DNA of 64,000 nucleotides, from positions 90,433,800 through 90,497,799 of the forward strand of contig NC_083410.1 of the NCBI RefSeq assembly GCF_020745735.1. Reading direction: 5' to 3'. Position 1 is the first letter of the stretch. Each line of letters starts with the position of its first letter. The position numbers were made by a program, and so were the translations under genes. Below the pieces are notes generated by a model. That model saw only the letters and a program-made list of their open reading frames with translations. It searched no databases and was not told where the DNA came from. Below, piece after piece: positions 891-43,689 of the stretch. This stretch comes from Hemiscyllium ocellatum (Eukaryota).

Positions 891-1765
891 TTAATTTCCT
901 GGTGGTTTTGGTTCTCGCACGGGGAAAATGTTACCTCTCTAACTGCACAAGGCGCTGCATGTTGGCTATGGCAACATCGGATCTCCTGTTTATTCTCACA
1001 CAGATCATTCTTAGGCGCTTCAAATACCTTTACTACCCAGGATCTTTCCTGGATATCACTCCGGTGTGCAGTGCTGTCTTTGCCTTGGCTCGTGCAGCCA
1101 CAGACTGTTCTGTCTGGTTCACTGTCCTTTTCTCCTTTGAACGTTTTGTGGCCATTTCCTGTCTGAAACTGAAGAGAAAATATTGGACAGAGAAAGCCTC
1201 GGCTGTGACTCTGGCTGCAACTGGCATTCTGCTCTGTTCAAAAAACATTCCCTTCTATTTTCGGTTTGAACCGAGGAGGATAATTGACAATGTTCAGTGG
1301 TATTGTCAAACAAAGTCAAGTTATTTGAATGATCCCAGGTGGCTGGGGTTTAAGTGGTTCGATATCACTTTAACCCCTTTAATTCCATTCGTGTTAATTC
1401 TGTTGATGAACACTCTGACGGTAAGGCACATTTTAGTGGCCAGTCGAGTACGCAAGAGCCTGAGGGGTCAGAGGAAGGGAGACAGTCACAAAGATGCAGA
1501 GATGGAGAGCCGGAGGAAGTCGGTCATTTCCCTCCTCACCGTATCCATCAGCTTCATACTTCTGTGGTTCGTGCAGGGTGCAAACATCTTGTACAATAAC
1601 ATTAAAGGAAGGAATCGTTGGAAGTACAGTCATTCCAATATTTTTGTATGCACTGGAGAAATGCTGAAGGATTTCAGCTGCAGCACAAACACATTATTTT
1701 ATGCAGCGACTCTGCCCAAGTTCAGAGCGAAGTTCAGGAATGCAGTGCACCAACTGGTCATGTAA
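891..1765 (+). CDS. GPR139-like class A GPCR, gene A, exon 2 (end of TM1 to C-terminus); exon 1 lies upstream of the window
   Basis: Polypyrimidine tract and acceptor (ttccctcctgtgtctttcag|TT AAT TTC CTG) give a phase-1 entry, xNFLVVLVLARGKCYLSNCT. The frame is open to TAA at 1765. Hydrophobic TM segments are present, with LAMATSDLL (TM2), DCSVWFTVLFSFERF (TM3), KNIPFYF (TM4), EMESRRKSV (ICL3) and SCSTNTLFY (TM7). Confidence 0.88.
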
Positions 1766-5384: not shown

Positions 5385-5998
5385 TGTTATGGACCAGACC
5401 CTCTAAAAGTATTTTAAGATGGTAGCCCAGACCCTAACTTTTCTATTTTTTTTTACATGTGTAAAGTGGATATTCCAGGATTAATGGAGCAGGTGAACAT
5501 TCATTGGTTTAAGTAGAACAGAGTTTATATACAGATTATCGAATGAAATACAAACAAAAGAGAACAGAAGACTGAATAACTTCACCCATCCAAAAACCCA
5601 ACAGACTGTCCCAACTTAATGATTGTTCAAAATTCCTCCAACAACCTCCATAAGCACCCAATACAGGAGAGATTTCAGAGAGAGATTCAGCATGGAACAA
5701 CTTCAACCATGTCGCTGTTCCTTTTACCTGCAGTTTAAATATCTGACAACTTCCAAACACCAACCCAAGCTAAACCAGACCAGAGGAAATCCGAGGTGGG
5801 AGAATTGGCCACCCCCCCCTTTCATTGCAGACGTTTGTATATTTGAAAGCCTTTTTGCTTGAGGCAGTTTCTGTTAGCTATCACAAAATTGGCTCTGCAA
5901 CCCATCCAAACTCGACATCCCGGAACCGTTGCATTTGCAAACACACTAAGCAAACAAACAAGGACACACAACCTTGGGAAAGGGGCAGCATCATCACA
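5385..5998. mobile_element. Solo LTR inserted into a minus-strand CR1 3' fragment (about 5215-6160)
   Basis: TG...CA termini. The start (tgttatggaccagacc...ttttaag...agcccag) resembles the LTR at 27228-27872. CR1 3' sequence (TRTRGHSLRLKG on -) resumes after it. Paralog at about 58837-59350. Confidence 0.55.
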
Positions 5999-8161: not shown

Positions 8162-8910
8162 TTGGGAGCTTCCTGTGAAGCGCTTCTGTGATCTTTCCTC
8201 CAGCATTTATAGTGATTTGTACCTGCCGCTTCTGGTTGTCAGTTCCAGCTGAACGCTGCAGTGGTCAGTATACTGGGTCCAGATCGATGTGCTTATTGAT
8301 TGAATCTGTGGATGAGTGCTATGCCTCTAGGAATTCCCTGGCTGTTCTCTGTTTGGCTTGTTCTATAATAGTAGTGTTGTCCCAGTCGAATGCATGTTGC
8401 TTGTCATCTGCGTGTGTGGCTACTAAACATAGCTGGTCTGTCATTTCGTGGCTAGTTGGTGTTCATGGTTACGTATCTTTAGCTGTCTTCCTGTTTGTCC
8501 TATGTCGTGTTTTGTGCAGTCCTTGCATGGGATTTTGTACACTACATTACATCCCATGCAAGGACTACATTGGACAAACAGGAAGACAGCTAACGATCCG
8601 CATCCATGAACACCAACTAGCCACGAAACGACAGACCATCTATCCTTAGTAGCCACACACGCAGATGACAAGCAACATGAATTCGACTGGGACAACACAA
8701 CTATTATAGGACAAGCCAAACAGAGAACAGCCAGGGACTTCCTCGAGGCATGGCACTCATCCACAGATTCAATCAATAAGCACATCGATCTGGACACAAT
8801 ATACCGGCCACTGCAACGGACAGCTGGAACTGACAACCGGAAGTGGCAGATTCAAACCACTACTAATGCCGGAGGAAAGATCACAGAAGCGCTTCACAGG
8901 AGGCTCCCAA

Positions 8911-9689: not shown

Positions 9690-10169
9690 GGTTAGATGGA
9701 GAAGAATTTGTTAAGTGTGTACATGAAAATGTTCTGATTCAACATGTGAATGTACCCACTAGGGAAGGTGCAAACTTGACCTACTTCTCGGAAATAAGGC
9801 CGGGCAAGTGACTGAGGTGCACTTTGGGGCCAGCGACCAGAATTCTATGTGTGAAAATAGTGATGGTAGAGGATAGACCAGGTCTGAAAGTTGAAATATT
9901 AAATTGGATGACGGTTAACTTTGATGGCGTTAGGCAAGAATTTTCAAAAGCTGGTTGGGGGCAGATGTTCGCAGGTAAAGGGACGGCTGGAAAATGGAAA
10001 GCCTTCAGAAATGAGATGACGAGAGTCCAGAGATAATATATTCCTGTCGGGGTAAAAGGAAAGGCTAGTGGGTGTAGGGAATGCTGGATGACGAAATAAA
10101 TTGAGGGTTTGCTTCAGAAAAGAAGGAAGCATATGTCAGGTAGCGACAAGAGAGATTGAATGATTCCTT
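9690..10169 (+). mobile_element. CR1 ORF2 fragment (endonuclease end and linker), ending at an assembly gap
   Basis: Homologous to the CR1 at about 21925-22290 (GQMFAGKGTAGKWKAFRNE). Confidence 0.8.
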
Positions 10170-13005: not shown

Positions 13006-13964
13006 CTATTCAGTTGATTGATATGAATGTTTTGTAAATTTGTTATTAGACACTTTTAAAAAATTCACACGTTTCTTAATTGCATGAAATGGAGACATTA
13101 TTGCATTTCTCAACTTTTCTCTGAATTTAGACTGAGCCAAAGCATAAACACATGTGTTTGTACAGGTGCTCAGCAGCTGAAACATATCTGCAGTGTAGTC
13201 TGCGATCAATATGGGATCAGTATAATCATCTGGCTCATAAAACGGGTTTGTAAATCTGGAAATGAGGAAAAACACAGTATATGGCATCCACAGCACGATG
13301 AAAGTGCCAGAAATGGTGAACAGTAAAGTGATAGATTTCCTTCGGCTCCGCATCTCTGGATCGTCGCTGTTCTGGGTGTTGCGTTGACCTTGCAGTGCTC
13401 TGCGGTTTCGATTCACTATCACAATGTGTCGGACAGTCAGTGCATTGAACAGTAAAATGAGAACATATGGCAATAGTGGGTTTAAAATTGTATCAAGCCA
13501 GTCGAAGGTGATCCATCCTGGTAAGATAAAGTAGTCTGGTTTTGCATGAACGCCCCACTCCACATCGTGAATAATATTGATTGACTCAAAAGTAAAATAC
13601 AAGGGAATATTTTTAAGTGAGAACACAACACACACGGTCACTATCACCACAGCTGCAGTTTCCTCCCTGCAATACTTTGCTCTCAACCTCTGGCAACAAA
13701 TGAGGACAAAGCGATCGACAGTGAAAGCGACCGTGAGCCAAACAGAGCAGTCAACAGGTGTGTAGTTGATCACCTCATTGATGGTAGTTATTGAGGTGAA
13801 GTGTAGAAATGAAAATGGGAAATAGTAGTAAAGCATGTAGTAGATTATCACATTGGAAATAATGACCAGGAGATCAATTGTCGTCATACCCACCAAATAA
13901 AGAGAGATCCCTTTGGATAGACCACAGCCTCCACGACTTAGAAGGACAATTGTCAGGAGGTTAG
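13006..13964 (-). CDS. GPR139-like GPCR, gene B, exon 2 (intact)
   Basis: Acceptor ttttcattgtag|CT AAC CTC CTG gives ANLLTIVLLSRGGCGLSKGISLYLVGM, in frame with ORF 13006-13896. Motifs DCSVWLTVAFTVDRF, KNIPLYF, DPEMRSRRKS, VLWMP and STCTNTCVY are present. Confidence 0.93.
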
Positions 13965-16974: not shown

Positions 16975-17044
16975 CAGGAACTCCGAAGATTGCGAGTAAA
17001 TGGTAGTAAGTGAAAGCTGTCTGTTCAATTGTTGATAATTCCAT
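16975..17044 (-). CDS. GPR139-like GPCR, gene B, exon 1 (MELSTIEQTAFTYYHLLAIFGVP+G)
   Basis: 70 nt from the ATG (gaaaATGG) to the donor CCT G|gtaag. Phase 1 matches the exon 2 acceptor. The spliced CDS is 1029 nt = 342 aa plus stop. Confidence 0.92.
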
Positions 17045-17107
17045 TTTCAGAGAGAGAGGACGATGTCAATTGTTGTTGACAGGTCTGAACCATCAGACAT
17101 TCATCCG

Positions 17108-17192
17108 TTATATAAAGCAACTAAACCTCCCCTGTGATTTTGTGCAGTTGCAGAGAGAGTGAAATTACTTTACGGTCTTTGAACAAACAGGT
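17108..17192 (-). promoter_or_regulatory. Gene B core promoter: TATA box (TATATAA, 17114-17108) and upstream element ACCTGTTTGTTCAA (17192-17179)
   Basis: The TATA box lies about 65-70 bp upstream of the ATG. The 14-mer is identical in the promoters of C and E. Confidence 0.65.
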
Positions 17193-36240: not shown

Positions 36241-37395
36241 CCTGTACAATCCACATTGTACTTTAAAAATGAGTCATTGCTGTAATGTAGCAGTGAATCT
36301 GTACACAGAGAGACCTCACATTCAACAATAAGAGAAATGATCAAACAATCTGCTGTCAGTGATGTTGGTTAGAGGATAAATATTAACCAGAAGACCATGG
36401 ATGACTTCACTGCTTGTCCTCAAAGGAGGGCTGTGGGAAATGTTACATCCAATGAGGAGCGTGGACTGGTGTTGTGTTACCAGCTCATCTGAAGTGGAAT
36501 TCTGTCAGCCTCAGACATGTGCTTGATCACATGACCCTGTGATGTCGAGATGTGAATAGACCACAGAGGCAAGACTGTTACTGAGAGTTTGTTTCAACCT
36601 CTGAAGACAGAATTGTAATAGTCAGTAGATTGATGGGAATGCTTTGTAACTTTGTTTCCAGTCATTTTTTAAAACAATATTTGACATTGTGAAAAATTTC
36701 AAGAAATTGAAACTTTATTGCATTTTTCAAATTTTCCCTGAATTTAGACTGAGCCAATGCATAAATCAATGTGTTTGTACAGGAGCTCAACAGTTGAAAC
36801 ATATCTCCAGTATAGTTTGCAATAAATATGGGATTAGTATAATGATCTGGCTCATAAAATGTATCTGTAATTCTAGAAATGAGGAAAAATATAGTATATG
36901 GCATCCACAGCACGATGAAAGTACCAGAAATAGCGAGCAGTAAAATGATGGATTTCCTTCGGCTCTGCATCTCTGGATCGTCGCTGTTCTGGGTGTTGCG
37001 TTGACCTTGCAGTGCTCTGCGGGTTCAATTCACCATCACAATGTGTCGGACAGTCAGTAGATTAAGAAGTAAAATTAGAAAGAATGGCAATAGTGGGTTT
37101 GAAATTTTGTCAAGCCAGTCAAAACTGATCCATCCTGGCAAGTTAAAATATTCTGGTTTGAAATGAGCGCCCCACTCCACATTGTTAATTATATAGATTG
37201 GCTCAAAAGCAAAACACAAAGGAATATTTTTGAGTGAGAACACAACACACACAGTCACTATCACCTCAGCTGCAGTTTCCTTCCTGCAATACTTTGCTCT
37301 CAACCTCTGGCAACAAATGAGGACAAAACGATCGACAGTGAATGCAACGGTGAGCCAAACAAAACAGTCAACAGCTGTGTAGTTGATCACCTCAT

Positions 37396-37952
37396 CGCTT
37401 CAGAGAACACCTCTGGGCCGCCCGACCAACCAACCCAACCACCCCGTGGCTCAACACTTTAACTCTCCCTCCCACTCCACCGAGGACATGCAGGTCCTTG
37501 GACTCCTCCACCGGCAGAACATAACAACACGACGGCTGGAGGAGGAGCGCCTCATCTTCCGCCTGGGAACCCTCCAACCACAAGGTATGAACTCAGATTT
37601 CTCCAGTTTCCTCATTTCCCCTCCCCCCACCTTGTCTCAGTCGGTTCCCTCAACTCAGCACCGCCCTCCTAACCTGCAATCTCCTTACTGACCTCTCCGC
37701 CCCCACCCCACTCCGGCCTATCACCCTCACCTTGACCTCCTTCCGCCTATCCCACCTCCATCGCCCCTCCCCCAAGTCCCTCCTCCCTACCTTTTATCTT
37801 AGCCTGCTTGGCTACTCTCTCTCATTCCTGATGAAGGGCTTATGCTCGAAACGTCGAATTCCCTATTCCTGAGATGCTGCCTGGCCTGCTGTGCTTTAAC
37901 CAGCAACACATTTTCAGCTGTGATCTCCAGCATCTGCAAACCTCATTTTTTA
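37396..37952 (+). mobile_element. PLE family 2 3' fragment inserted in GPCR C exon 2
   Basis: Perfect 8-bp TSD CACCTCAT (37388-37395, 37953-37960). GIY-YIG C-terminus PVAQHFNSPSH...RRLEEERLIFRLGTLQPQGMN. Confidence 0.92.
37824..37859 (+). ncRNA. Minimal hammerhead ribozyme motif (PLE family 2), intact
   Basis: auuc-CUGAUGA-a-gggc(uuau)gcuc-GAAAC-GUC-gaau. 4-bp stem I, 4-bp stem II and palindromic ACGU stem III. Predicted cleavage after 37855. Confidence 0.8.
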
Positions 37953-38719
37953 CACCTCATTGATGGTACTTATTGAGGTGAAGTGTAGAAGTGAAAATGG
38001 GAAATAGTAGGATAGCAGGCATGTAGTAGATTATCACATTGAAAATAATGACCAGGAGATCAACTGTCGTCATACCCATTAAATAAAGAGTGATCCCTTT
38101 AGATAGACCACAGCCTCCACGAATTAGAAGGACAATTGTCAGGAAGTTCGCTATGAAGAAAAGAGCAGAATCCCCAGATTAATGACACAAAATTACTTGG
38201 AAATTATGATACAAAACCAGGCCATTTTGTCCAATAGGTCTACGTTGAGGTTCACACTGCATATGTGTTTACTCCCACTGACTTTATCTTACAATATTGA
38301 GATATTATTCCTTTCAGCCTCACGTAGTTACTGAGATTTCCAATCAGGCAAACTCACAAAATGTGCAGAAGTACTGCACAGATCAGAAGGAAGCAAAATC
38401 TTTCTCAAACCAGAATCCCTTTACAGAGATGTGCAAGGCTATAATTAAACAGAAGGGTGGATCGGGAGGGAGTGACTGTCTCATTTGAACATTGACTAAT
38501 TTACATACAATTTTCTGAAGCTAATTGGGAGGTCAATTGACCACAATTGTGTGGGATACATTTTATTACAAAGGTCTCACAGGCGGGGTGTTTTCCAGTC
38601 AGGGGCACCGAGACAGATAAAAGTCCATCCATATCTTTGTAAGTGGAGATGTCCTCAGTGATGTTTCCCATGAAGTGGTAGATTGAGCTCCATTTGGTTT
38701 CAAGGATTTTGTGTTGTTC

Positions 38720-43299: not shown

Positions 43300-43369
43300 C
43301 AGGAACTCCGAAGATTGTGAGGAAATGGTAGTAAGTGAAAGCTATCTGTTCAATTGTTGATAATTCCAT
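43300..43369 (-). pseudogene. Gene C exon 1 (MELSTIEQIAFTYYHFLTIFGVP+G), itself intact
   Basis: 70 nt from ATG to CCT G|gtaag. TATA at about 43427-43435 and the 14-mer at 43498-43511. Confidence 0.88.
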
Positions 43370-43689
43370 TTTCAGGGAGAGACAATATCAATTGTTGACA
43401 GATCTGAATCATCAGACATTAATACATTATATATAGGAACTAAATCTCCCCTGTGATTTTGTGCAGTTGCAGAGATAGTGAAATTAGTTTGTGGTCTTTG
43501 AACAAACAGGTAGAATTAATTTTAATAGATATTACACAATACAATCTTCACCTACACCGGAAGAATGAAGGAGAACAATTGGGCCAGGTCCATCTCAAGG
43601 GTCCTTGCTCGCTGTCTTAGTGCTCTCTACACGGATGCTCACACCATCCCTGCCATGCCTTTCTCACTTTGCCCCGTCAACTAGATACT

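Follow-up and report, generated by a model that had tools for sequence, protein, structure and literature searches.

A conserved promoter word upstream of GPR139-like receptor genes in sharks

A word of 14 bases, ACCTGTTTGTTCAA, stands upstream of receptor genes in the window, the whole stretch of 64,000 nucleotides from Hemiscyllium ocellatum that was analysed. With a probability of about 0.6, this 14-mer includes the best-conserved element in a compact promoter of the TATA type, which would have been inherited from an ancestral GPR139-like gene, kept by selection and recognized by a putative forkhead-class activator. The invariant part is an 8-base core inside the 14-mer, TGTTTGTT (17182-17189(-) in gene B). 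All 12 shark promoters for which exon 1 was identified carried the motif, namely genes B, C and E of the window and nine promoters of the sevengill shark Heptranchias perlo (L001-L009), and the core was in sense orientation in every one. Because TGTTTGTT is found at the same place, about 63 bases upstream of the TATA box, in every shark member sampled, it is probably a common on-switch of these genes.

Receptor genes and sites of the 14-mer in the window

Four open reading frames of the window, 902-1765(+), 13006-13896(-), 36662-37390(-) and 55775-56759(+), gave Pfam 7tm_1 matches as rhodopsin-type receptors, and the genes are two-exon class-A GPCRs of a shark-expanded, "GPR139-like" type. Their homologs numbered more than 1000-2000 cartilaginous-fish proteins, nearly all automatically named 'probable G-protein coupled receptor 139'. 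Judged from these sequence matches, the numbers argue for a lineage-specific expansion over a single GPR139 gene, the name being a product of automatic annotation. Literature searches on the GPR139-like family in sharks returned no paper describing it, and the receptor family is apparently very large and undescribed.

Two subfamilies are represented, with 39% protein identity between A and B. Clear orthologs of the B clade come from Scyliorhinus, Heterodontus, Chiloscyllium, Stegostoma, Carcharodon and Heptranchias and are 66-82% identical, and A, together with D by the similarity of its exon 2, belongs to a large expansion with 55-72% identity. The subfamily of E was assigned from its duplicate D and from exon 1, whose pattern is that of the large expansion, since exon 2 of E was not found within the window. 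Exon 1 of B, whose product is half of the first transmembrane helix, was confirmed by the annotated N-termini of orthologs from six other sharks (MELSTIEQTAFIYYHFLAIFGVPAN...). Gene C is regarded as a pseudogene because its exon 2 is in pieces, though its promoter and exon 1 look intact; the pieces matching the B protein are 38148-38020, 38018-37953 and 37396-36680, and approximately 550 bp of foreign sequence separate 37953 from 37396.

The 14-mer was located exactly in B, C and E, and with a single mismatch in the D relic, so that the coordinates in the earlier note were correct for all four sites (Table 1). The distances to TATA that it had given for B and E also held, and that of C was similar. 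GTAAA follows the 14-mer in B and E as had been reported, whereas C has ACAAAC instead, and the gaaaATG start seen in B and E was found in C as well. When up to two mismatches were allowed, the window contained 7 matches against 1.13 expected, a number reached by none of 100 shuffles.

These sites do not represent four lineages. B and C are near-identical duplicates over the whole promoter and exon 1, and D and E are approximately 90% identical from upstream of the motif up to GTCCCCCA, beyond which D has lost the TATA box, the 5′UTR and the start codon. B/C and D/E are therefore two recent duplicate pairs, and the independent promoter lineages of the window number two. When the B, C, D and E promoters were simply aligned with MAFFT, the 14-mers did not come together; as the flanks are too divergent for such an alignment, promoters were anchored on the annotated ATGs.

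Table 1. Promoter and coding features of the receptor genes in the window.
Feature	Position	Strand	Remark
Gene B 14-mer ACCTGTTTGTTCAA	17179..17192	-	starts 148 bp before ATG, ends 65 bp before TATA
Gene B AT-rich box 2 GTAAAGTAATTTC (GTAA part, TAAT-like part)	17161..17173	-	core-anchored display
Gene B box 3 TGCAAC	17147..17152	-	alignment and core-anchored display
Gene B O/E-like word TCACAGGGGA, one mismatch to TCCCNNGGGA	17128..17137	-	
Gene B putative TATA box TATATAA	17108..17114	-	from sequence
Gene B 5′UTR 10-mer AATTGACATC	17062..17071	-	exact match in E, 60933-60942(+)
Gene B coding exon 1, MELSTIEQTAFTYYHLLAIFGVP plus 1 nt, phase-1 GT donor	16975..17044	-	N-terminus matches P0002, P0003, P0006, P0009, P0012
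Gene B coding exon 2, intact 7tm_1 receptor body	13006..13964	-	tttcattgtag acceptor before 13964
Gene C 14-mer, same as in B	43498..43511	-	63 bp before TATA
Gene C exon 1	43300-43369	-	ATG at 43369
Gene C exon 2, broken	36680-38148	-	
D relic 14-mer ACCTGTTTGTACAA	49102..49115	+	no TATA, 5′UTR or start codon downstream
D exon 2, with stops	55775-56759	+	
Gene E 14-mer	60806..60819	+	starts 158 bp before ATG, ends 64 bp before TATA
Gene E putative TATA box TATAAAT	60883..60889	+	from sequence
Gene E coding exon 1, MTFSIYAVWKIFITTLPFVTIP plus 1 nt, GT donor	60964..61030	+	

Three further features of the window were observed. In exon 1 of B the 14-mer recurs in inverted form as AGCTGTCTGTTCAA, at 17015-17028(+) and with 2 mismatches, approximately 150 bp downstream of the promoter copy and within the codons for IEQTA, and C has it at the matching place; it is probably due to chance because it is absent from the Heptranchias ortholog. 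A reading frame lies just upstream of the exon-2 acceptor in A (805-889) and in D (55805-55897)(+), where it reads MESFHCSLGRSGECLISD..., and the NCBI models of three Chiloscyllium punctatum orthologs take this frame as the N-terminus (MEIFHSSLGR...). In A the frame has no ATG and contains a stop, and it is either an alternative form in this clade that lacks the first exon or an artefact of the gene models. Finally, two overlapping ORFs on opposite strands at 8188-8836 encode near-identical peptides (…SRSMCLLIESVDEC…GQTGRQL…HEHQLATK) and represent a repeat element duplicated in inverted orientation.

Promoter layout in sharks and a skate

Promoters were sampled from two shark species, Hemiscyllium ocellatum and Heptranchias perlo, and from one locus of the skate Leucoraja erinacea (L005). 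In each related locus the annotated start codon is at position 10001 and was set independently of the present analysis. Seven distinct Heptranchias genes were counted, including the B ortholog, L001, and the other genes form at least three further promoter clades (L002/L006/L007/8/L009-11; the two tandem genes of L003; the two genes of L004).

The ortholog of B reads TTGTTTGTTCAA, or AGTTGTTTGTTCAA in the longer reading, and its equivalent of the 14-mer starts 150 bp before the ATG, compared with 148 in B. The two promoters can be followed without a gap from the motif through CCGTAAG, TCTCTC.GCA and ATCAC.GG to TATAAATAACGGATG. In L002, both genes of L003, both genes of L004, L006, L007 and L009, CTGTTTGTT was found in the sense direction at the same place, and the Heptranchias genes other than L001 all read AATCTGTTTGTT(C/G).

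In a display anchored on the core, the layout of these promoters is as follows. Box 1, (A)ATCTGTTTGTTCAA, is followed 4-8 nt later by an AT-rich box 2, which is GTAAAG in B, GTAAAT in E, GTAAG in L001, GTAAC in L003 and L004, ATAAAA in the L002 clade and CTAAAA in L009, and which often continues with CTAAT. TGCAAY comes approximately 40 bp downstream of the first base of the core word (CTGTTTGTT), at the same offset in most promoters. After it come an O/E-like word in some clades, TATA(A/T)A, the 5′UTR and (G)AAAATG, which opens an exon 1 of 22-28 codons plus one base. Almost every shark member has retained the (G)AAAATG context, also between subfamilies whose proteins are 39% identical; the skate has CACAATG.

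In the shark promoters the equivalent of the 14-mer starts 142-169 bp before the ATG, and TATA starts 66-94 bp before it. From the end of the 14-mer equivalent to TATA there are 59-65 bp, mostly 62-65, in 11 shark promoters, and L009 fits when it is anchored. The earlier note had staked its proposal on positional fixity in other family promoters, and this is what we found, with the motif in sense orientation and 59-65 bp upstream of TATA throughout the shark sample. From box 1 to TATA, the usual 62-65 bp amount to about six helical turns, and helical phase may play a role.

The O/E-like word, which departs from TCCCNNGGGA at no more than one base, was present in three of six promoter clades (B/C, L002/6/7/9 and the skate), compared with a background rate of 1.4% for each 45-bp window before TATA. 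It is located approximately 15-30 bp before TATA, and approximately 40 bp in the skate. Within the 45 bp before TATA, the best words of E, L001 and L004 have 3 mismatches and that of L003 has 2.

In the tandem genes of L003, the whole promoter module is tandemly duplicated approximately 133 bp upstream (5716-5990, 9724-10000), and the duplicated unit begins with the TTGTTTGTTCAT box, continues with GTAAT and TGCAAC and ends at a TATA-like GATATACATATGGG.

The skate promoter could be compared at the homologous place (9829-9856), which was set by the landmarks AATCT and C(A/T)ACCTCAA common with the L002 type. It reads AATCTCTGTTCGTGACTTGTAAACA, in which box 1 is degenerate (AATCTCTGTTCGTG) and box 2 is a perfect forkhead word, GTAAACA. 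In this one gene, the decay of box 1 together with GTAAACA in box 2 may represent turnover of a binding site. No further Leucoraja proteins were among the best 120 homologs listed, and exon 1 of a second, broken skate gene in L005 was not found.

Two other words noted earlier did not extend to the family. The E-box CACCTG is limited to E and D, the corresponding bases being TACCTG in B and C and AATCTG or AGTTG in Heptranchias. The 10-mer of the 5′UTR, AATTGACATC, is indeed exact in B and E, which are its only such copies in the window, but it fails as a family feature: C reads AATTGATATT, and no Heptranchias relative has a matching word at the aligned place. We treat the identity of B and E here as a partly homologous 5′UTR plus luck.

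Conservation of the core and its flanks

Since the promoters are homologous, the presence of the 14-mer in each of them does not count as an independent event, and the argument for function is that it is conserved where the flanks are saturated. When eight shark promoters were aligned with MAFFT, TGTTTGTT was the longest stretch without any change, a length reached in none of 100,000 column shuffles, and the next-longest runs were TATAAAT and AAATG. Between clades, the 14-mer was 79-100% identical, compared with 41-57% for the 100 bp upstream and 42-58% for the interval from the motif to TATA. Random or unrelated 100-mers showed 44 ± 5% identity, and the flanks are thus at the random level.

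The enrichment that the earlier note had expected among upstream regions of the family was borne out by a de novo word test on six divergent regions of 300 bp, in which TGTTTGTT was the only common 8-mer and the only common 6- and 7-mers were parts of it. Among 2000 random window sets, a common 6-mer occurred in 0.1% and a common 7- or 8-mer never. In 260 kb, comprising the window and the non-redundant loci, 15 of the 37 exact matches to TGTTTGTT were at family promoters. Among the shark copies examined, the core is substituted only in the D relic (TGTTTGTA), which is a dead copy. Taken together, the conservation, the k-mer test and the dead copy indicate an island under constraint in otherwise saturated sequence.

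The earlier note had taken the full 14-mer as a family-wide signature. The positionally fixed signature across deeply divergent subfamilies stands, with 12 shark promoters from two species, but constraint on all 14 bases does not, as the constrained part covers about 9-12 of them. Across the family the outer 5′ bases are AC, AT or AG, and the outer 3′ bases are CAA, CCA, CAT, GAA, CAG or CGA. Because these positions vary, the 14/14 identity of B and E overstates the constraint and is partly a matter of luck or specific to the species.

The binding factor, alternative readings and known systems

The forkhead assignment proposed earlier agrees with the core, since all intact shark copies have ACAAACA on the bottom strand, in keeping with RYMAAYA. 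The general forkhead core is RYMAAYA and the stringent consensus of FOXJ1 (HFH-4) is WDTGTTTGTTTA (PMC4168999); the FOXD3 consensus is NAWTGTTTRTTT, and FOXE3 binds GATTGTTTGTTT in EMSA (PMC8369840). The FOXJ1 and FOXD3 consensus sites both contain the 8-base core of the family. The form TCTGTTTGTTCA (L003 and L006, and L009 with A after it) matched the FOXJ1 consensus at 10/12 positions with different flanks, and ATCTGTTTGTTC matched the FOXD3 consensus at 9/12 counting N, with an identical core and, again, different flanks. Specifically, the family has C before TGTTTGTT (CTG) where FOXJ1 has D, and C after it where both have T. Since the FOXJ1 match is 10/12 and the core is common to many forkhead proteins, the match does not single out one of them. 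As far as the bases can tell, a forkhead-class activator is the best guess for the factor at box 1, with about even odds.

It is tentatively conceivable, though rather unlikely, that box 1 is a real, selected promoter site for a factor of another kind, such as an HMG/SOX-type protein, a composite that reads box 1 with the CTAAT/GTAA box, or some other protein. The conserved word (A)ATCTGTTTGTTC is longer than the forkhead core, box 2 is at a nearly fixed offset from it, and the letters by themselves do not name the factor. Against this, RYMAAYA is present in every shark copy, and the two candidates compared failed: the SOX/HMG site WWCAAWG requires G where the bottom strand, AACAAAC(A/C), has C, and the glucocorticoid-receptor-like (GRE) half-site TGTTCT is not conserved, its last positions being variable (TGTTCA, CC, GA, CG).

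The exact identity of B and E could also reflect gene conversion over a short tract, or parallel change specific to the species, on top of the conserved core. This would be compatible with an inherited, selected box 1, and we consider it unlikely. It draws on the 5′ edge, which is ACCTG in B and E, compared with AGTTG in the Heptranchias ortholog of B and ATCTG in the other Heptranchias genes; however, two positions only are concerned, and B and E have nothing else in common in their promoters, which are 42-48% identical outside the 14-mer.

It is very improbable that the word is functionless and owes its identity to shared ancestry plus chance. All promoters do come from one ancestor, and the 14-mer was picked after a scan of 64 kb, in which many chance 14-mer repeats are expected; yet the core is invariant while the flanks are at the random level across clades at 39-60% protein identity and two shark orders, the position is fixed, and the sole mutated core belongs to the dead gene D. 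That the 14-mer is part of a transposable element before both genes is hardly credible and was rejected: although repeat-like sequence occurs upstream of both promoter types, the distances to TATA and ATG are fixed in every gene, the flanks are unique and non-alignable, and the other exact matches to TGTTTGTT lack the flanks of the promoter copies, with the exception of the duplicated modules of L003.

Under the preferred reading of an inherited and selected box 1, the ancestral gene of the shark-expanded GPR139-like family would have passed its promoter to its descendants, and selection would have kept box 1. With transcription presumably starting approximately 30 bp after TATA, box 1 would lie near -95. 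The activator that binds it would confer a common cell-type specificity on the whole family, and would, at about even odds, be of the forkhead class, given that ACAAACA fits RYMAAYA and that the top strand is similar to the published sites of FOXJ1 and FOXD3.

A promoter word shared by a receptor gene family is a known kind of thing, and the TGTTTGTT element and its family appear to be undescribed. Sharks have very few classical odorant receptors, and they carry hundreds to thousands of GPR139-like genes. A common promoter word predicts that the family is co-regulated by one factor class, and TGTTTGTT offers a handle for unannotated first exons and promoters genome-wide, for the expressing cell type and for asking whether each cell chooses one gene, as with other chemoreceptors. 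A more speculative and quite unlikely possibility is that the box and its partner boxes select an unrecognised sensory receptor repertoire of cartilaginous fish, driven by a forkhead factor in one dedicated cell type, e.g. a chemosensory one. If so, each cell's choice of one or a few receptors would act on the compact common promoter.

The promoters of odorant receptors, with their HD and O/E (EBF) sites, resemble the present ones in that a large receptor family has short factor-binding words fixed just upstream of the transcription start site, here a putative one, TAAT-like words are common, and an O/E-like word with one mismatch occurs in three of six clades here. They differ in that the dominant invariant element here is the forkhead-type TGTTTGTT, which to our knowledge is not part of the odorant receptor promoter code, that the O/E-like word is not universal, being absent from E, L001 and L004, and that the receptors here are GPR139-like and not odorant receptors. 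Another comparison is provided by the V1R and V2R clusters, in which tandemly duplicated vomeronasal receptor genes carry the proximal promoter along and keep common motifs. Promoter conservation in those clusters is mostly among close paralogs, whereas here an island of 8 bases has persisted in subfamilies whose proteins are 39% identical and in different shark orders.
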